Shown: positions 7,984 to 56,234 of the stretch, one piece after another
How the letters are laid out: each line of letters opens with the position of its first letter
Position numbering within the stretch: the stretch's first letter is position 1
Sequence record: MW384823.1
Reading direction: 5' to 3' (one strand)
Length of the DNA stretch: 64,000 nucleotides
Notes under the pieces: generated by a model
Databases searched by the model: none
The model's input: only the letters and a program-made list of their open reading frames with translations
Told to the model about the DNA's origin: nothing
Position numbers and translations under genes: made by a program

Positions 7984-8054
7984 CCTCAAAGCGGGATTAA
8001 AACCCCGCTTTATTTTTTTACTTGAATACCTGATTTATATAGGAGGGTAACATC

Positions 8055-16956: not shown

Positions 16957-17541
16957 ATGGAACACAATTTGTTGGACGTAGTAAAGAAGCTTGCCCGAGA
17001 TGGGCAGTTAAACCAAGTGCGAAAGCGCATCGTGTCGAGCATCGCTAAAATGGTAAACGTGGCTAACGAACAGTCCGGATATAATGAAGCCCTACATCGT
17101 GAACTCGATGAAGACAAACTGATCCCGCACTTTCGCATGCCGCAGGCGAATAAGATTTACCAGCCCGGTGGTAAAGGTTCCACGTTGGTTGTGGAGATGA
17201 ACCCGAACTGCACGTTGGCCAAACGTCTACTGAAAGAAGCGGAATATCGCTACTTCGCTGTCTGGGACTTTGAAGAGATTGAACTGGATTACGGTTTAGC
17301 TGGACACTGCCGCGTTACTGCACTGGCAGGTTTCCTCAATCGCTTTCCGGGTTTGAAGGGTAAAGTGACTGTGGGCGAAGACAGCCGCGGGCCAACACTG
17401 AACGCACCGAACGATGTGGTTGAGTTGGATTTCGTGGTGATTGCCCCCGATGGCAAGTATCATCTCCAGCGTTTTACCAATGACAACGTAGGGCATGTGT
17501 GCGCACAACTGCACATCAGCTACTACCAGTCAAAAAAATAA
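16957..17541 (+). CDS. hypothetical protein
   Basis: 194 aa in operon. Confidence 0.75.
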   Translation: MEHNLLDVVKKLARDGQLNQVRKRIVSSIAKMVNVANEQSGYNEALHRELDEDKLIPHFRMPQANKIYQPGGKGSTLVVEMNPNCTLAKRLLKEAEYRYFAVWDFEEIELDYGLAGHCRVTALAGFLNRFPGLKGKVTVGEDSRGPTLNAPNDVVELDFVVIAPDGKYHLQRFTNDNVGHVCAQLHISYYQSKK

Positions 17542-17632: not shown

Positions 17633-18697
17633 TCATTTTTCAGCATGGTCTAACAAGGGCTGAATCAGGGTTTGCCGGAAGTGGTTATAGACCGCCTTTG
17701 GCAACTTGTTTAAGACCTTGGTATCTGCGTAGCGACCGATCTCATACGAGACGTCCTTCAGGTACGCATCCATGTGACCTTTGTTGTACTGGAGACAGTG
17801 CAGCATCCAATGCCAGTTGACCAACGTCAGATGCCACGAGCCCTGGAATGTTAATCCGGGGTCACGGTGAACGATGCGGTCAATCGCAGTCCGATCTCCA
17901 TCTAATGGAAATTGGAATGGCTGGATGACGTGAGCCAATACGACCCCCGGTATTGGATTCCCCGTCAATAGCGACTGACGTGTCTGGGTGGCGTTGCGGA
18001 TAGCAATATCGCGCAGCGGCGGAACCGGAATCGTTCGCAAAGGTTGATCCATCTCGATATCTTGACCCATTGCCACAAAGCGATGGATGTTGAGTAACGA
18101 GATATCCATATAGCTCGGCAGCATACGGCTGATAACGTGTCGCCAGATATACGTCGGGCTGGTCACTACTTCGTTGGAACGGTTGTAATAGGCAAACGCT
18201 TTAACGTGTTGCCACAGCAGCTCTACGAGATTGATCTCGATAATACTCACCCCACGCGGCTTGCCATTCCCGAGTTGCCAGTTTAGATTGGTATACTCGT
18301 GATACAGGTAGCGGGCCGGTGCGTATTCGCGAAAGGATAACTCAGGATCGATTGGGCGGGCTACGAGAGAGATGATCTCATCTTGGCCTTCGATGAACAT
18401 ACCGTTGAAGACTTTTCCGTATTCACCCATCGAGGTTAAGCGCTCGGCGTTGCCGATGCCAATCAACCGTCGTCGACATGCCCACTCTACGGTTTCGTAG
18501 TCGGGGTCTGTTGAATAACCGATGGCTGAAATTAACTTTGCGATGAGGTGGCCGGATTCTACACGGGTCTGTACCGAGTCAAAGTAGTTGCGAATACGTT
18601 GGTGGTTATTTTTTACAAGAGCTGCCAATTGTATAGCGGTAGGGTCGACGTTATGCCCTTTGATTTCCACTTGCTTTAATTCGGCTTGACTGAACAT
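17633..18697 (-). CDS. conserved chimallivirus core protein divergent from chimallin
   Basis: Start MFSQAELK with CAGGAG RBS; position matches the gene preceding ChmA in phiKZ-like phages. Confidence 0.8.
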   Translation of the reverse strand: MFSQAELKQVEIKGHNVDPTAIQLAALVKNNHQRIRNYFDSVQTRVESGHLIAKLISAIGYSTDPDYETVEWACRRRLIGIGNAERLTSMGEYGKVFNGMFIEGQDEIISLVARPIDPELSFREYAPARYLYHEYTNLNWQLGNGKPRGVSIIEINLVELLWQHVKAFAYYNRSNEVVTSPTYIWRHVISRMLPSYMDISLLNIHRFVAMGQDIEMDQPLRTIPVPPLRDIAIRNATQTRQSLLTGNPIPGVVLAHVIQPFQFPLDGDRTAIDRIVHRDPGLTFQGSWHLTLVNWHWMLHCLQYNKGHMDAYLKDVSYEIGRYADTKVLNKLPKAVYNHFRQTLIQPLLDHAEK

Positions 18698-38490: not shown

Positions 38491-39108
38491 ATGTCTCGTC
38501 GTAAAAAGCAGCCTGGTTTTAGCCCGCGTGAAGCAGCACGCGAACGTGTCCGTAACATCATGCGTGGCATGAACACGACTGAGAGTGTTTTCCTCGGTCA
38601 TTCGAAAACCCACGCCGAGAAAATCGACCGTGAGTTTGAACGTATCAACGCGCTGATGGGTGAAGACCTGAAAGCGTATTTGACGGAGTGGTTAAAGAAC
38701 TCTCAGGCTGCCTTCTTGGGTGCCATGCAGGACTTCAAAACGCGCCTGTTCGCCGTGCGTACTGATGCCGATGCAAAGGCAACCAAACTGATGGAGGTCA
38801 TCGACGGCCACAAGTGGGACGAAATCAAAGACGTCGTGGTTGTGGCTGAGCTGGAACTGGCGGACTTTGACATTCAGGTGGATACCGTGGCACAGGAAAC
38901 CCTGCTGGCTATCGTTGAAGCCGGTGCTGCCTACGAGCAGCGTCGTGAATGCGTCCGTGTGGGTCTGCACAACAACTGGTCCCATGAAGCGATTCTGACC
39001 AAGCTGCGCGAGCTAGACAGCCAAGCCGCAGCCGCTGCCTTAGCGGCGGCAGAAGCAGCCGAAGCGTCAGAACCTGTAGCAGAGCAAGAGGAAACTGCGA
39101 ATGTCTAA
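38491..39108 (+). CDS. hypothetical helical protein
   Basis: Start MSRRKKQ with AAGGA RBS. Confidence 0.85.
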   Translation: MSRRKKQPGFSPREAARERVRNIMRGMNTTESVFLGHSKTHAEKIDREFERINALMGEDLKAYLTEWLKNSQAAFLGAMQDFKTRLFAVRTDADAKATKLMEVIDGHKWDEIKDVVVVAELELADFDIQVDTVAQETLLAIVEAGAAYEQRRECVRVGLHNNWSHEAILTKLRELDSQAAAAALAAAEAAEASEPVAEQEETANV

Positions 39109-41155
39109 CGATCCGCGTCCGACGTTCGGTGCTGCCGAACCGGAAACGGCTGAGGTGCGACTTCCTCCGCGTGAAACCCTGATGGGTAAATCCGCGGAGG
39201 AGGTGGCCTTCGAGCTGGTAAAACTCAATCCCACTTTTTCTTTTGCCGAAGCAACCGAGCGGGCGAAAGAGTTAGTGGTGCTGAACGCCCCGGTAGAAGA
39301 TACGCCGCCGCCTGTGGTGGATACCCAACCTGCGGTACTCGACCAACCGATGGTGCGTGAAGCCACACCGGAAAATCTCGCGGCGCTGCAAAGCACAGAG
39401 AACCAACTGGAACAACCGGTTAAGCTTGATCTCTCTCCGGTACAACCGGCAGCCGCAGAGCCTGAGCCGCAAGCCGCGGTACAGCCGCGTGTCGAACATA
39501 TCGCCGAAGCGCCGCCGATTGTTCAGCCTTTGGGTGTACAAACACCTAAACCGGAGTTCGTTCCGGTTAAGGCGGAAGTGATTCCTGCCCCGGCACTCGA
39601 TGTTGAAGATCCCCCGGCCGATCGCGATGAGAAGACGCCGAACCTCTCGAAAGAGAAACGTCGTCAGATTGACTTCGGGCCAGAAGCACACCGTGCTGAA
39701 ATTACCAGCATGGACCCCGAAGACCCGCATCGCGTGCTGACGCAAAGCGATGAACTGGTGGGTACCACGCTGCCGCTGGCCGGTGAGCAGGAAGTCATGC
39801 AATTCTTTGCCAGCATCCCGCGTAACCGTGAAGGGCGTCCGATGTTCCGTTCAGCCGCTGAAGAGGAGCGTTATCAGAAGCTCTTTACGGCGCTGGAGCT
39901 GACCCCGCCTATCATGATCAACAACCGCGCCGCGTTTGACATGGCGCTGGAACGTGAAGACACGGCGTGGCAACAGACCATCAAGCTGCCGAACGGTAAG
40001 TATGTCTCTGCGGTCACTGACCGTGGTGCGAATGCCCAAGGCGCGATGGCCGCGCTGCGTCGTCGTCGTGGTTCCGGTTCTCCGGTTTCCGTGTGGCTGC
40101 CTGCAACCGGTATCTTTGTTGGCTTCCGCGCCCCGCATGAAAACGACATGTGTGACTTCGATATTCGTATCACGTCAGAGCAGTCGAAAATCGGGATGTT
40201 CACCTACGGTCTGCTGTTGGCCTCGTCTTCGGGCGTGTATCTCCAGCACATGATCGAACACTCGCTGAACTTTGCGGTCGACACCACGTACGACTGTCAG
40301 GGTCTGGACATTAAGACCGCCCTGATGGATATCGTGGATGTGGACGACTACTGGCTGCTGGTCATCGGGCCGTTGATGGCGAAATTCCCGGCGGGTATTC
40401 CATGGAAGCTGCTGTGTCCGAATCACGAATGTGGACATGAGCGTGAAGTGCGTCTGAATCTGGCTCGCTGTATCCGTATGGCAGATGGCCTGTTCTCTGA
40501 CCTGCACCGTTCGCTCTGGCTGCGCCAGCGTGGTAAAGGGCCGGATGCGATCATCGGTAACGCCGAGTATCTGGAATACCGCAAAGAACTGCCGAAGTCC
40601 AAAGCCGCCCGTTTCAACTACGAGCAGCTGGGCATCACGGTCGAGTTCGGTCGTTCCACTATCGGTCAGTTCATCGATAACACCAATGCGTGGGTAGAGA
40701 AGATTAACACCTCTGCCACCAACGCACTGGCAAATCATGCGACCGAATCTGAGCGTTCGCAATACATCCGTTTGGCTGCGGAAAACCGCCGCCTGACCCG
40801 TTATGCGACACACGTTAAAGCCATCATCGTTGAAGAGACGGTGAAAGGTGAATCGGTTGAGACCCGCGAAGAAGATCCAGACCGTATTTTCGAAATGTTA
40901 GAAGAACTTTCTTCTGACCGCATGTACGTGCTGGCATTTGAAAACGCGCTGTCCACTTACAACGAAGAATCGCGCATGGCCGTGTTTGGTTACATGGGTC
41001 ACGCGTGTCCGAGCTGTAAGACCGGGGAGGGTGAAGAAGACGGTCCGTTCCGTGGTATTGTTACCATCAGCCCGGACAAGGTTTTTTTCGCGCTATCTCG
41101 TGTGGTGTTCGAGATACAGAGAGTCTACTTACAACAATTCGAAAATATTGGATAG
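39101..41155 (+). CDS. conserved core protein (phiKZ gp77-like) with CxxC pairs; candidate assembly chaperone
   Basis: 684 aa; Pro/Glu-rich N-terminus; CPNHEC and CPSC. Confidence 0.8.
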   Translation: MSNDPRPTFGAAEPETAEVRLPPRETLMGKSAEEVAFELVKLNPTFSFAEATERAKELVVLNAPVEDTPPPVVDTQPAVLDQPMVREATPENLAALQSTENQLEQPVKLDLSPVQPAAAEPEPQAAVQPRVEHIAEAPPIVQPLGVQTPKPEFVPVKAEVIPAPALDVEDPPADRDEKTPNLSKEKRRQIDFGPEAHRAEITSMDPEDPHRVLTQSDELVGTTLPLAGEQEVMQFFASIPRNREGRPMFRSAAEEERYQKLFTALELTPPIMINNRAAFDMALEREDTAWQQTIKLPNGKYVSAVTDRGANAQGAMAALRRRRGSGSPVSVWLPATGIFVGFRAPHENDMCDFDIRITSEQSKIGMFTYGLLLASSSGVYLQHMIEHSLNFAVDTTYDCQGLDIKTALMDIVDVDDYWLLVIGPLMAKFPAGIPWKLLCPNHECGHEREVRLNLARCIRMADGLFSDLHRSLWLRQRGKGPDAIIGNAEYLEYRKELPKSKAARFNYEQLGITVEFGRSTIGQFIDNTNAWVEKINTSATNALANHATESERSQYIRLAAENRRLTRYATHVKAIIVEETVKGESVETREEDPDRIFEMLEELSSDRMYVLAFENALSTYNEESRMAVFGYMGHACPSCKTGEGEEDGPFRGIVTISPDKVFFALSRVVFEIQRVYLQQFENIG
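41083..41116 (+). promoter_or_regulatory. candidate -1 programmed ribosomal frameshift signal
   Basis: In-phase heptamer T TTT TTC (41083-41089), hairpin TATCTCG/CGAGATA (41094-41116), open -1 frame into 41194..41562. Confidence 0.6.
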
Positions 41156-41193
41156 ACGCCGACGACGTTCCAGCCGAAGCTATCATCACTGCC

Positions 41194-41562
41194 ATGAAGC
41201 TGGACACCACCTCGCTGTTCAAACGGCGAGACAGTCGACCTATCACGTATCAAGAAGCGCATGACGAGCTACTCTCCACGTACGACGGGATACTCGGGTT
41301 AGAGACCGGTGAGAACAACATCAGTGTCTCTGACTTCGAGAACCCCATCAACCAGAGCTTGTATGAAATCTGGGCGACCACGTACGTGCGGGAAGGTATC
41401 AAGGAGTTGTTTGGTTACGACCTTGACACTTGGCTTGATAGGCCGCGTTGGAAGTTGATGAAGCATCTGGAAATCGCAAAACGTCGTCGTGCTGAGCTAG
41501 ACAATGCTAAGAAAGGCGCAATCCCGCCAGAACTTGAGAAAGAACTGAAAGGGCGCATCTAA
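41194..41562 (+). CDS. conserved core protein (phiKZ gp79-like); possibly C-terminal part of a frameshift fusion
   Basis: 122 aa; no Shine-Dalgarno before ATG; frame open back to 41035. Confidence 0.75.
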   Translation: MKLDTTSLFKRRDSRPITYQEAHDELLSTYDGILGLETGENNISVSDFENPINQSLYEIWATTYVREGIKELFGYDLDTWLDRPRWKLMKHLEIAKRRRAELDNAKKGAIPPELEKELKGRI

Positions 41563-41621
41563 GGGAGCTTCGGCTCCCTTTTATTTTTTTGTTGTTATGA
41601 GACCCATTTTAGGAAACCGTC

Positions 41622-42476
41622 ATGACTGACTTATACGAAGACTATGCCGACACACTCGGTCTGGTGAGACAAGAAGGCCGACTGGCCCCGGTGTTAGACT
41701 TAGTGTCGTTAGCTATCGAGTATGGTTACGATACGACGCTGATGGATATTTATACCGGTCAAATCCCAGACATGAATGAAGAGTGTCTGCGACTGGAAGC
41801 CCTCATTAACCGTTGCGCATGTGCGCTGGCACAACGACTGGGTGTGGGCCTGAACCCGCAGGTGGCCTACCGTAAACCAAAAGAGGTCGTGCGTATCCTC
41901 CACGGACTGACCTCCGCTTTTGAAGAATTCGAAGACACCGACACCTTGTACGGGATTCTGCTGTCCGGCGAACCGCCCGCTTACATTCTGGAAAACATGG
42001 TGCGCTATGTCTACGGGGACAACGATATCCACTTCGAAGACCTTGTGGTTGTGGTAGAACCGCGCGTCATGAACGTGATGCGTAACTTCCTTGCGGCCAC
42101 GTCTGCCGAACAACAGGCCGAGGGTACCGACAACCCGCGTATGCAACGGGTGGTGCAATTCTTGCGTGTCTACCCACAAAACCCATCGGCGTATGTCTTC
42201 CTGAACCTGAGCGACACGACTGACATCAACAGCGTCGTCAGTGCGCTGGATTTCAGTGACGAAGGCGGGGTTGGGGAAAGCGAGTTGCTTACCATCTACG
42301 CGGTCGGGTTGTCCATCATTGAAAACGAGACGTTCGATGAAGCCTATGCGGCACTCGAAGGGATGCTCGAGCTGATTAACAGTGATGAGGCCCCTGAAGA
42401 ACCCATCTTGCGGGATGGCTTGGCGGGCTTGAAAACCATCTACGGGGTAGAGGAGCAAACTGATGAACCGGATTGA
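41622..42476 (+). CDS. conserved acidic hypothetical protein
   Basis: 284 aa, AGGA RBS. Confidence 0.85.
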   Translation: MTDLYEDYADTLGLVRQEGRLAPVLDLVSLAIEYGYDTTLMDIYTGQIPDMNEECLRLEALINRCACALAQRLGVGLNPQVAYRKPKEVVRILHGLTSAFEEFEDTDTLYGILLSGEPPAYILENMVRYVYGDNDIHFEDLVVVVEPRVMNVMRNFLAATSAEQQAEGTDNPRMQRVVQFLRVYPQNPSAYVFLNLSDTTDINSVVSALDFSDEGGVGESELLTIYAVGLSIIENETFDEAYAALEGMLELINSDEAPEEPILRDGLAGLKTIYGVEEQTDEPD

Positions 42477-44326: not shown

Positions 44327-46105
44327 TTAAAACCCTTGCGCGTATTCTTCCGACGGTTCGCTGTTAGCAACACGACGGTTAAACGCATCCAGCACATCAT
44401 CCTTGTCCGGTAAGAGGAAGAAGGTGTTAGCGATATCCATCGCATTCACACGACCTGCTGTCAGGTTCACACCGGTACGACGACGAACTTCCTCAGATAC
44501 CCCATTGATGAACAGCAGTTCAAAGATGGTGGTTTCACGAGACTGGTTCATCATGTTGGTTGCCGAAGGATACGCCTGTGTTAAGTCGGCATCCGCGGTT
44601 TGACCACGGAAGGCCGAATAGAACTGCGGCAGCTCTTTCAGAACATCCAACCCGTTCTCGGCATTCATACACGCCGTTAACGTGACAATCCAACCGTCTG
44701 TCCCGATAACCTCCTCATCGTAGTTGTTGCGCATCTCCGCACCCACACTGCCCGCCACGTAGCCTTGGGCTAACAGGTAGTAGGTGAAGGCGATACAGAT
44801 ACGTTTCGGTAACGACGGGAAGATATCGTACATCGAGTAACCGGCCAAAATCGTTATCGCTGAGGACAGGTCATTGGTTTTCTTATCCAACAACACAATC
44901 ATCAGGTTATCGAAGATGTTATAGACACAATACTCCAGCGGGAACTCTCGCTGGGCTTTTAAGTGCCAATCCAGTTTCTCTTCGTACGGCAGACCCGGTA
45001 TGTCAAGCTTGTTCAGTCCCAGCTCTGAATCCAGAATGGCGTTCAGTTTATAGCTGGGTCGCTGTCCTTCATGCACACGCAGAGAACGGAACAACACCAT
45101 GGCATCCACGCAGAAGAACGACGCCATGCAGTACAGGACGTGCCACTGCTGACTCGGTGCTTTGGTGAGCGACTTGGACTCCGTCTTCTTCGACGCCAAA
45201 TCTTTCTTGAACCACACCTTGCGATACTGCCTTGGGACATCCGGGTGACAGAACACGTCTTCCGGTTCGATACAGCCACGCTCTAACGCTTCCATCATTC
45301 GTGTGATATCGAACTCGTGGTTCCATGCCACTAACAGGTCAGGCAGACGTGGGTGAATCTCTTCAAACATACGGACGATACATTGCGCCGAGTCTAAGCA
45401 CTCGTAGGTGAAGATTTTGTAATCAGCGATTACGTTCTTCACTTTGACTTCGGTTTCGCCCGTCTTTTTATTTTTTTCTCTGAACTCAATCTTGCTCAGC
45501 AGTTCCTGCGCTTTGGCAACCAGACGGTCTTCCCAGTTCTTGCCGATACGGGCCACGTAATCTTTCGTGCAGAACAGGTGAATTTCATCATCGAGTACAA
45601 AGGACATGATCCACGGGTCACGCGACTTGTCTTCTTCGCGTGTTTCTACGTCGTAGACGCAGATACGGTTCGGTGTGGTGCAGTCTTTGTACTTGGCCAT
45701 GTACTTCTGTTTAATCCAGCTCGTGACCGGTAAGTCAGCCAGATAAACAAACGGGCTGGTACAGACCTGACGAAGACGCTTCTTCGGGTCAGGGAAACGG
45801 GCACCCAAACCCATTTGCAATGTCTTGGCCATTAACGCATCGGTCGTCAACAATTCCTGACAACGCGACTTCAATTCGAACTCTTTCTTTTCCTTGTGAT
45901 TACGGTACGGCTCTTGCGTCACGTACACCGGACGCTTTACGTTTTCACGCAGCTGGATACGCGGAATAAGCCGTCCATCCTTAGTATGGATGACCTCTTT
46001 AATGAGGACTAAGTCGTTTTCCCCGCTGTCGTCAGTGGCATAAGCGACGTGCTTACACTCCTTCGCTATGACGTCCTCGGGACTGAAATACATGTTGGTT
46101 TCCAT
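44327..46105 (-). CDS. B-family DNA polymerase, exonuclease plus motif A subunit (phiKZ gp82-like)
   Basis: ExoI YDVET, ExoII WNHEFD, ExoIII YNIFD, motif A DADLTQAYPS. Confidence 0.88.
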   Translation of the reverse strand: METNMYFSPEDVIAKECKHVAYATDDSGENDLVLIKEVIHTKDGRLIPRIQLRENVKRPVYVTQEPYRNHKEKKEFELKSRCQELLTTDALMAKTLQMGLGARFPDPKKRLRQVCTSPFVYLADLPVTSWIKQKYMAKYKDCTTPNRICVYDVETREEDKSRDPWIMSFVLDDEIHLFCTKDYVARIGKNWEDRLVAKAQELLSKIEFREKNKKTGETEVKVKNVIADYKIFTYECLDSAQCIVRMFEEIHPRLPDLLVAWNHEFDITRMMEALERGCIEPEDVFCHPDVPRQYRKVWFKKDLASKKTESKSLTKAPSQQWHVLYCMASFFCVDAMVLFRSLRVHEGQRPSYKLNAILDSELGLNKLDIPGLPYEEKLDWHLKAQREFPLEYCVYNIFDNLMIVLLDKKTNDLSSAITILAGYSMYDIFPSLPKRICIAFTYYLLAQGYVAGSVGAEMRNNYDEEVIGTDGWIVTLTACMNAENGLDVLKELPQFYSAFRGQTADADLTQAYPSATNMMNQSRETTIFELLFINGVSEEVRRRTGVNLTAGRVNAMDIANTFFLLPDKDDVLDAFNRRVANSEPSEEYAQGF

Positions 46106-55298: not shown

Positions 55299-56234
55299 AT
55301 GCCTATTCCAAACATGCTGTCGGTGCTCTTGCCGAGCTTCGAAGCAACGAATCTGAAAAACACGCTGAACGCAAACTGCGATGCCATCAGTGAATCACTG
55401 CTGCCGCAATTTGAAAACCTGCGTGACCTGGTCGGTAGCGAACAGGGGAAACCGTTCCTCTCTAAGCCGGTGCAAACCCTGAGCGAAGAGTTGGTGAAAA
55501 TGTTGCGTAGCTCTGGCCTCGAGGTCAAAGGTCTGCGCGACCCATCTGCACTGGAATACATCATCGCAGCCATGCGCAACACGCTGGAACTGCGTCCGTT
55601 TATTGAACAGTGCATTAACCGTGACATCGGTAAGCAGGTTGTAACCGCTTCACTGACGTTCAACAAATCCACGCTCCTTCAATTGCTGGACCTCATTAAC
55701 TTCTTTGTTCTTTACAGCGGTACGCTCGTAAACTACATCACTGCCGAAGAACTCGGCGCGGTGGAGAACTCGAACATTGCAGTCAAAGGTATTGGTCCAA
55801 ACGATTTGCAGTACCTCCATGTTCGAATGGTGACGTACGGCATCGCTTGTCGTGTTCTGGCTACGCCTCAGTCGAAGCTCAAAGCAGACTATGCGGAAAT
55901 CCCGGAAGCGGTATTTGATGAAGACACCTACAATGATCTGGTTAAGTCTTTCGGTTCGAAAGCCACCGATCCGCTGGGTCTCTCCGCAGTACCATTCCCG
56001 CTCACCATCATTTATCGGATTAATCTGTCGTGGAACGAATGGCAGATGGACAACTACGATGAAGTGTGTGAAGCGGCGAAAGCAGCCGAGTACCGTATCT
56101 TACTGTTCAAGAAACAGCAAGCGGAAGGTAAAGGCGACGCGGCGTTGGAAATCCTTATCGAGAAACACGAGAAGCGTCTGGATTCCCTGAAACGCAAACG
56201 CGAACGTCTGGCAAAAAAGAACGGTCTCGAATAA
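55299..56234 (+). CDS. virion head protein (phiKZ gp90-like)
   Basis: 311 aa, C-terminal coiled coil; synteny. Confidence 0.65.
   Translation: MPIPNMLSVLLPSFEATNLKNTLNANCDAISESLLPQFENLRDLVGSEQGKPFLSKPVQTLSEELVKMLRSSGLEVKGLRDPSALEYIIAAMRNTLELRPFIEQCINRDIGKQVVTASLTFNKSTLLQLLDLINFFVLYSGTLVNYITAEELGAVENSNIAVKGIGPNDLQYLHVRMVTYGIACRVLATPQSKLKADYAEIPEAVFDEDTYNDLVKSFGSKATDPLGLSAVPFPLTIIYRINLSWNEWQMDNYDEVCEAAKAAEYRILLFKKQQAEGKGDAALEILIEKHEKRLDSLKRKRERLAKKNGLE

Follow-up and report, generated by a model that had tools for sequence, protein, structure and literature searches.

A conserved in-phase slip site and a candidate programmed −1 frameshift in the phiKZ gp77-like gene of the Chimalliviridae

Introduction

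Changes of reading frame that give two proteins from one gene are known from several systems, and one that is close in layout to the case reported here is the tail-assembly-chaperone frameshift of the lambda G/GT and P2 E/E' type, reportedly treated by Xu, Hendrix and Duda in 2004. The present case is a candidate programmed −1 frameshift in the gene for a homolog of phiKZ gp77, at positions 39101–41562 of a 64,000-nucleotide (nt) stretch of sequence record MW384823.1; this whole stretch is called the window below. The segment 39101–41562 matches Erwinia phage pEa_SNUABM_43 (MW384823.1, Machinavirus) at 100% and with identical coordinates, and pEa_SNUABM_43 is a jumbo phage of the SPN3US/phiKZ kind. 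Few phages have been studied as intensively as the Chimalliviridae (phiKZ, PhiPA3, 201phi2-1, Goslar, SPN3US).

Other described systems also bear on the locus. Insertion sequence (IS) elements of the IS3/IS1 kind usually have a strong downstream pseudoknot or hairpin. Escherichia coli dnaX gives its two products, tau and gamma, in a set ratio, and the slip to an early stop depends on two stimulators, a Shine-Dalgarno-like element upstream and a hairpin downstream. The known cases of transcriptional slippage have runs of about 8–9 nucleotides or more. T4 gene 26 also yields two products, by internal initiation.

The gp77 locus shares features with each of the frame-changing systems and differs from all of them. 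As in lambda G/GT and P2 E/E', a −1 slip near the 3' end of an open reading frame (ORF) would give short and C-terminally extended proteins with a common N-terminus, the arrangement is kept across a large phage group despite sequence divergence, and the downstream part has no start of its own. Unlike lambda G, the gp77 gene is not beside a tape measure or tube gene, its protein is five times larger, and the 201phi2-1 homolog is not flagged as a virion protein. Tail-assembly-chaperone families gave no match in Pfam or PHROGs, and the sole BFVD entry named 'tail assembly chaperone' has an E value of 7.2. An initial annotation, made from the sequence of the window, had held that the locus mirrors lambda G/GT, while noting that no tape-measure gene lies beside it. 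This stands for the layout but not for the position of the gene or for membership in a chaperone family; the gp77 site is not a member of the tail-assembly-chaperone system, and the likeness is formal only.

IS3/IS1 orfA-orfB resembles the locus in that a −1 ribosomal slip gives a fusion protein, and U_UU.U_UU.C is among the motifs that IS elements use (Sharma et al. 2014, PMC4066793), but strong downstream structure is not evident at the gp77 site and the proteins are unrelated. The in-phase, homopolymeric, bacterial-type heptamer and the two products recall E. coli dnaX tau/gamma, whereas the dnaX slip shortens the product and the gp77 slip would lengthen it, and neither of the dnaX stimulators is evident here. 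Transcriptional slippage (Thermus dnaX, Shigella mxiE, some IS elements) likewise involves an A/T run in a gene joining two frames; in contrast, three chimallivirus lineages hold the layout with runs of only five or six Ts (T5 or T6).

Slip site and reading frames in the window

Two genes are annotated at the locus in MW384823.1, coding sequences (CDS) pEaSNUABM43_00055 and _00056. The CDS at 39101–41155 is labeled 'putative baseplate hub assembly protein, T4 gp26 like' and that at 41194–41562 'hypothetical protein'. The upstream ORF (39101–41155, 684 amino acids, aa) lies in frame 2 and the downstream ORF (41194–41562, 122 aa) in frame 1, and the downstream ORF is thus in the −1 frame relative to the upstream one. 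Within the upstream ORF the codons GTT TTT TTC place the heptamer T_TTT_TTC in phase at 41083–41089, 21 sense codons ahead of the TAG at 41153–41155. The −1 frame is free of stops from 41035 to 41559 and continues for 157 codons past the slip site, so that a slipped product would have 663 + 157 = 820 aa. The initial annotation had reported the same heptamer, distance to the stop and open −1 interval and had predicted products of 684 and about 820 aa, all of which were recovered here from the frames, the coordinates and a reading of the window. Its central claim, a programmed −1 shift that fuses the two ORFs, finds strong support in the comparative sequence evidence given below.

In the window, T_TTT_TTY occurs in phase only at this site among 18,944 codons of long ORFs. 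Phe codons are TTC in 70% of cases, and TTT comes first in just 3 of the 41 Phe-Phe pairs. There are five in-phase A/T homopolymeric heptamers, and the −1 frame continues for 157 codons at the slip site versus 0–14 codons at the other four. By arithmetic, the chance that 157 random codons are free of stops is about (61/64)^157 = 5e-4.

A programmed −1 ribosomal frameshift is probably the best explanation of this layout. Ribosomes on the gp77-like gene would arrive at the Phe-Phe codons TTT TTC, preceded by a T, and a fraction of them would slip one base back, with tRNA-Phe re-pairing to UUU in the −1 frame. The unslipped ribosomes would add 21 more residues and stop at the fixed TAG, giving the 684-aa protein; the slipped ones would translate another 157 codons to make a protein of about 820 aa, whose helical C-terminal domain is conserved across the Chimalliviridae. 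The small annotated downstream gene would have no translation start of its own. We infer, rather than observe, that the ribosome and not RNA polymerase would slip, how efficiently it would do so, and that both products would be needed. The features of the locus, with their strand in parentheses, are as follows.

39101–41562 (+): whole gene as recoded in the proposed model, phiKZ gp77 homolog; frame 0 to the slip site, then frame 0 (684 aa) or frame −1 (about 820 aa)
39101–41155 (+): frame-0 ORF, short product of 684 aa; folded core about residues 230–640, predicted disorder about 64–227
41083–41089 (+): slippery heptamer T_TTT_TTC, in phase; T7 run at 41082–41088, Phe-Phe codons at 41084–41089
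41090–41155 (+): dual-coding overlap; 21-codon frame-0 tail and TAG, simultaneously frame −1
41089–41562 (+): frame −1 extension of 157 codons, stop at 41560–41562; predicted helical, matches phrog_7580
41194–41562 (+): annotated 122-aa ORF, the 3' part of the extension; ATG unconserved and without a Shine-Dalgarno sequence
41094–41116 (+): hairpin with a 7-bp stem and a 9-nt loop; weak putative stimulator
41561–41590 (+): intrinsic terminator made of a GC-rich stem and a T run; immediately past the −1 stop, at the end of the transcription unit
38491–39108 (+): upstream operon partner in the position of phiKZ gp78; 8-nt overlap with the start of the gp77-like gene

Conservation across the Chimalliviridae

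The 684-aa protein is a homolog of phiKZ gp77, with full-length profile matches to phrog_8054 and phrog_4585 (E = 0 and 3.9e-56). A tblastn search with it found PHIKZ077 and 180 phage records, whose hosts include Pseudomonas, Erwinia, Salmonella, Serratia, Ralstonia, Burkholderia, Xanthomonas and others.

The junction was read at the nucleotide level in 19 genus-level lineages. They comprised the Machina group, the Caitlin group, SPN3US, CR5, phiEaH2, Wellington and four lineages from IMG/VR, together with phiKZ, PhiPA3, PS119XW, RVTF4, 201phi2-1, Goslar, RSL2, Ea35-70/AH06, Moabite, PCH45, Ea277G and a relative of RTH11. The Phe-Phe codons, which encode F662 and F663 of the window protein, are TTT TTY in 19 of 19 lineages, and in 18 of them the conserved extension occupies frame −1, which stays open upstream through the site. 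Conservation of the heptamer and of the open −1 frame in phiKZ, SPN3US and their relatives had been proposed as a check when the site was first noticed, and this is its outcome. Ten Machinavirus records share an identical heptamer, phase and open −1 frame. In SPN3US, CR5, phiEaH2, Wellington and several IMG/VR genomes, a T7 run in that phase is followed by a 21-codon frame-0 tail with its TAG and by 157–162 codons in frame −1. Elsewhere the site takes the following forms, the heptamer being reduced to a U_UUY tetramer in the last three.

phiKZ, 201phi2-1, Moabite, PCH45 and Ea277G: T_TTT_TTT (T7)
Goslar, RSL2, Ea35-70, AH06 and the IMG/VR relative of RTH11: T8, containing T_TTT_TTT
PhiPA3: G TTT TTT (T6)
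RVTF4: A TTT TTT (T6)
PS119XW group, 6 records: A TTT TTC (T5)

In 132 of 136 phage records, conservation of the −1 protein starts at the codon that immediately follows the site. When the −1 piece of the window was used alone in tblastn, it aligned from residue 1 in 62 of 63 SPN3US-like records, always spanning two annotated genes, and the −1 piece of PhiPA3 aligned from residues 1–3 in 70 of 73 phiKZ-like records, for example across 'PHIKZ076.4 | PHIKZ077'. BLASTP between the window extension and the phiKZ extension gave no significant match; homology is seen by profile-profile comparison, in which hhalign relates the final ~100 residues of the SPN3US-like extensions to those of the other clades (probability 97.7%, E 2e-12).

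No fused homolog is present among the 37 protein clusters of the upstream protein, all of which are 644–706 aa long. The −1 piece, run against 1.84 billion representative proteins, recovered just small ORFs with scattered starts and no continuous gene, and a protein search with a six-genus alignment added no new clade. Three of the clusters of 684-aa homologs, P0020, P0025 and P0028, have 192, 282 and 241 members from hundreds of Salmonella and E. coli assemblies, on contigs of up to 240 kb; since the homologs are found in those assemblies, SPN3US-like jumbo phages appear often to be co-assembled with, or carried in, sequenced isolates.

Coding signature and selection in the overlap

The share of codon differences that are synonymous was determined for each frame among 18 distinct SPN3US-like sequences. 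Upstream of the run this share is 38% in frame 0 and 8–11% in the other two frames, and after the TAG it is 45% in frame −1 and 8–10% in the others. In the 63-nt overlap between them it is 39% in frame −1, 26% in frame 0 and 4% in frame +1. Codon-position entropy agrees: at the run itself frame −1 takes over the coding signature from frame 0, and the overlap is 2–3 times less variable than either flank. Since both patterns show constraint on both frames there, both are evidently read in the overlap.

The frame-0 TAG keeps its position in all 18 sequences and always takes its first two bases from a −1 codon CTA, ATA or TTA, which together make up 8.9% of the Leu and Ile codons in the window. 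The fixed TAG, formed solely from rare Leu and Ile codons, indicates that the frame-0 stop, and with it the end of the short product, is under selection too.

RNA signals and the candidate slipping enzyme

Several observations weigh against a programmed ribosomal frameshift. Because no convincing stimulator was found, the efficiency of slipping could be low. The initial annotation had reported a perfect 7-bp hairpin, TATCTCG/CGAGATA, and the hairpin is present as described, with TATCTCG at 41094–41100 pairing with CGAGATA at 41110–41116, 4 nt after the heptamer. The stimulatory role that this implied found no convincing support. At −7.1 kcal/mol the hairpin is weaker than 78% of the 45-nt windows in its own gene (z-score −0.41 against shuffled sequences), none of the 13 predicted hairpin pairs shows covariation, and Wellington-type phages have two uncompensated mismatches in it. 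The hairpin was rejected on these grounds as evidence of a stimulator. Its spacer is 4–6 nt, versus the 5–9 nt taken for downstream stimulators. A long-range pairing that joins the bases immediately past the run to the TAG region, seen in the minimum-energy fold of the window, was also rejected, as relatives do not preserve it. Downstream structure of notable stability was found in Goslar, Ea277G and PCH45 only, inspection of the aligned junctions revealed no conserved upstream Shine-Dalgarno-like motif, and Rfam gave no match. The frame-0 conservation in the overlap could in part be a by-product of the constraint on frame −1. The record of Xanthomonas phage RTH11 departs from the layout by one frame discrepancy, its upstream frame leading into neither conserved frame, while its 66%-identical IMG/VR relative has the normal layout. 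A run of 7–8 Ts, moreover, is also prone to slippage by RNA polymerase.

This last point leads to the alternative that survives best, although we regard it as unlikely: programmed transcriptional slippage, in which RNA polymerase, probably the non-virion enzyme of the phage, would stutter on the T run, so that part of the mRNAs would carry a run length that joins the two frames, and give the same two proteins. It would fit the homopolymer itself, which is T7 in the window and T8 in five relatives, and the failure to find a strong ribosomal stimulator, and the aberrant RTH11 record would still yield both products if the polymerase slipped in both directions. E. coli genes avoid UUUUUUU in all three frames, for which Sharma et al. 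suggest transcriptional slippage as a possible cause (PMC4066793). Yet the two-frame layout and the conserved −1 protein are kept with T6 (PhiPA3, RVTF4) or T5 (PS119XW group), and a homopolymer of about 8–9 or more is not present at the junction in all members (T7 in the window, T8 in five, T6 in two and T5 in one). Runs of T5 or T6 are generally too short for efficient stuttering by bacterial RNA polymerases. What does not vary is the in-phase codon pair TTT TTY, and the ribosome is favored because this pair, which re-pairing of the tRNA needs, is invariant whereas the long homopolymer that a polymerase needs is not. In E. coli the H_HH.U_UU.Y class is among the most efficient heptamers, with U_UU.C second and U_UU.U third among the tetramers (PMC4066793), so that a ribosomal frameshift would cover all lineages, including those with T5 or T6.

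The downstream ORF

A second alternative is that the locus holds two ordinary, separately translated genes, with the 122-aa protein made from the ATG at 41194, possibly by re-initiation after the TAG 38 nt upstream, and with the slippery motif and the open −1 frame incidental. All but one of the 28 records examined are annotated as two genes, and in several lineages a Met lies within a few codons of the window's ATG, but we consider separate translation very unlikely because of what is found at and ahead of that codon. The ATG is not conserved. In the Caitlin/ChrisDB/SNUABM_4/9 group (~74% nt identity) it is replaced by CTG and the annotated start lies 75–99 nt further downstream; the −1-frame protein is nonetheless conserved back to the T run. 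The first −1-frame ATG of SPN3US-like relatives falls anywhere from codon 36 to codon 124, at codons 61–124 in six lineages and at codon 123 of 159 in Wellington. The initial annotation was right that the ATG lacks a Shine-Dalgarno sequence: its pairing with the anti-Shine-Dalgarno sequence amounts to −0.2 kcal/mol, versus medians of −5.8 for 52 starts of long ORFs and −2.2 for all ATG triplets. The 35 codons upstream of the ATG, 22 of which overlap the upstream gene, show conservation at the protein level and coding-type substitutions with no start codon available, and this region was left as a gap of ~500 nt in phage 124.01 and in the original phiKZ annotation.

Gene callers have placed the start of the small ORF at many different positions. 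The annotated phiKZ 076.4 begins 218 nt past the gp77 stop, and in phage 124.01 the stretch after the gp77 stop carries no annotation. In four phages the −1 frame opens just 11 nt before the run, and in 16 of 19 sequences this frame has no ATG, GTG, TTG or CTG before the run. Because of this late opening and the lack of start codons, the conserved −1 sequence can be reached only by a frame change at the run or at most 4 codons from it. A terminator of the canonical intrinsic type occurs only after the −1 stop. The small annotated downstream gene is very probably the tail of a longer protein, with no translation start of its own, as far as sequence comparison can tell. The initial annotation had called this ORF gp79-like; it corresponds instead to the phiKZ 076.4 region, and the positional counterpart of gp79 is the next gene, at 41622–42476.

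A joined CDS is annotated in none of the 28 GenBank records, and the site was not described in the full-text literature searched (for SPN3US, phiKZ, Chimalliviridae/jumbo phage and gp77/PHIKZ077), a search whose coverage left out most subscription journals. The candidate frameshift site appears to be newly recognized; the mechanism itself would be conventional.

Exceptional records

Departures from the layout were counted as frame changes per record. Besides RTH11, these concern three records. Enterobacteria phage SEGD1 (KU726251.1), of the same species as SPN3US, is the sole record in which a continuous CDS (795 aa) is annotated across the junction; it has one frame change, within a short segment where it departs from SPN3US, to which it is otherwise nearly identical, and could be an assembly artefact or a natural variant that makes the long form only. 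Pseudomonas phage RVTF4 has one further frame break within the extension, and a 1.6-kb Logan contig that reads across the junction has two frame changes. P0041 and SEGD1 had been candidates for naturally fused homologs and were rejected, as the junction is crossed only through extra frame changes in those records. All four exceptions (RTH11, SEGD1, RVTF4 and the Logan contig) look like properties of individual records.

That a single long gene has merely been split by a sequencing error in the homopolymer, or by a recent inactivating mutation, is scarcely credible, for although homopolymers are error-prone and both SEGD1 and one short Logan contig read through the junction, these two look like errors in their own records, whereas well over 100 phages, sequenced independently in many laboratories and on many platforms, show the same split, and it has survived divergence to the genus level under purifying selection that acts on both frames as well as on the frame-0 stop.

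Fold and function of the protein

The 684-aa protein, its extension and diverse homologs have no relatives in Pfam, NCBIfam or the Protein Data Bank (PDB), and their PHROGs matches are to families without an assigned function. The AlphaFold model of the 684-aa protein has a predicted local distance difference test (pLDDT) score of 64, with a disordered N-terminal third and a folded core at about residues 230–640. Residues ~64–227 (within 39101–39800 of the window) are rich in proline and glutamate, predicted to be disordered (pLDDT ~30) and variable in length; relatives range from 508 to 720 aa in total, and the phiKZ-type homologs lack most of the N-terminal third. Four cysteines, Cys 439, 444, 636 and 639, are invariant in 33 SPN3US-like sequences (C-x4-C and C-x2-C, 190 residues apart), which suggests a zinc site that would link the core with the C-terminal segment shortly before the slip site. 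The CPxC motif lies ~25 residues ahead of the Phe-Phe pair and is present in phiKZ too. The model of the extension (pLDDT 57) is helical, and its structural matches are small ORFs of other chimalliviruses only.

Compared with the PDB, the 684-aa model has no structural neighbor (best E 0.65). In BFVD, searched with Foldseek, its own family comes first and is followed by A0A6J5KPC0, which bears the InterPro name 'Baseplate hub assembly protein, bacteriophage T4-like' (E 9.7e-6), a match between two predicted structures with template modeling scores of 0.24 (query) and 0.49 (target) and a root-mean-square deviation of 8.6. This match, together with similar labels in the GenBank records of pEa_SNUABM_43 and AH06, is the likeness to T4 gp26-type hub proteins, and matches of this kind are probably the source of the GenBank hub label. 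Searches for the T4 gp26-like family with six diverse members gave no Pfam match at E up to 10, and none was found in PHROGs or NCBIfam. A relation to T4-type baseplate-hub assembly may be taken as a weak, fold-level lead only. The 201phi2-1 homolog lacks an 'identified by mass spectrometry' note, unlike its two neighbors, and for this reason the protein is probably outside the virion, which fits an assembly factor and many other roles. The supplements of the phiKZ Grad-seq paper have no entry for these genes.

Gene neighborhood and other runs in the window

The gene order at the locus is a helicase, two small genes, the 684-aa and 122-aa ORFs, a 284-aa gene and a subunit of the virion RNA polymerase, with a DNA polymerase gene nearby on the opposite strand. 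No tape measure gene is among these neighbors (helicase, RNA-polymerase subunits, DNA polymerase). The gene context is the same in SPN3US, phiKZ and Goslar, and a gp78-like gene lies upstream of the gp77 homolog at every locus examined.

Further in-phase heptamers are present in the window. The DNA polymerase gene (44327–46105, minus strand) has A_AAA_AAT at about codon 211 of 592 (an A7 run at 45471–45477 of the plus strand), and its −1 frame stops immediately afterwards. The arrangement is that of dnaX gamma, in which a slip would give a truncated product, and it may be due to chance. The 311-aa ORF at 55299–56234 (plus strand) has A_AAA_AAG, the most slippery motif in E. coli, at 56213, 5 codons from its stop, and there the −1 frame swaps the last 4 residues for 14. 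An A-run heptamer is found at 18614, codon 29, of the ORF at 17633–18697 (minus strand), followed by an immediate −1 stop, and an A7 heptamer at 17532, at the very end of the ORF at 16957–17541 (plus strand).

T runs of at least 7 number 15 in the window versus ~2 expected from its composition, an excess of ~8-fold. Nearly all are intergenic and stand behind GC-rich hairpins as intrinsic terminators (e.g. at 8013, 14071, 23016, 31706, 36443, 41584, 49801, 59603 and 61736). The transcription units of the phage appear to end in host-type terminators.

Discussion

The gp77 homolog is a conserved core gene of nucleus-forming jumbo phages. If it is recoded as proposed here, more than 130 public genomes would be mis-annotated at this locus, and the small ORFs of the gp76.4 type would not be genes. 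Proteomic databases would then lack the long isoform and the first 35 to ~120 residues of the extension, and existing data would be unable to reveal the long form. Work on the function of gp77 would need to take account of two proteins that share a fixed N-terminal core. The site would also represent −1 recoding that is deeply conserved in phages yet belongs to neither the tail-chaperone nor the transposase paradigm and, apparently working without a strong RNA stimulator, it would be of interest to the recoding field.

More speculatively, and with little confidence on our part, the recoding might be a family-wide regulatory device, in which the ratio of short to long gp77 would be set by stuttering of the divergent phage RNA polymerase on the U run or by phage factors acting on host ribosomes in the course of infection. 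We know of no precedent for programmed slippage by a phage-encoded multisubunit RNA polymerase. If the recoding were such a device, the site would be a timer for assembly or for a nucleus-associated process specific to the Chimalliviridae.

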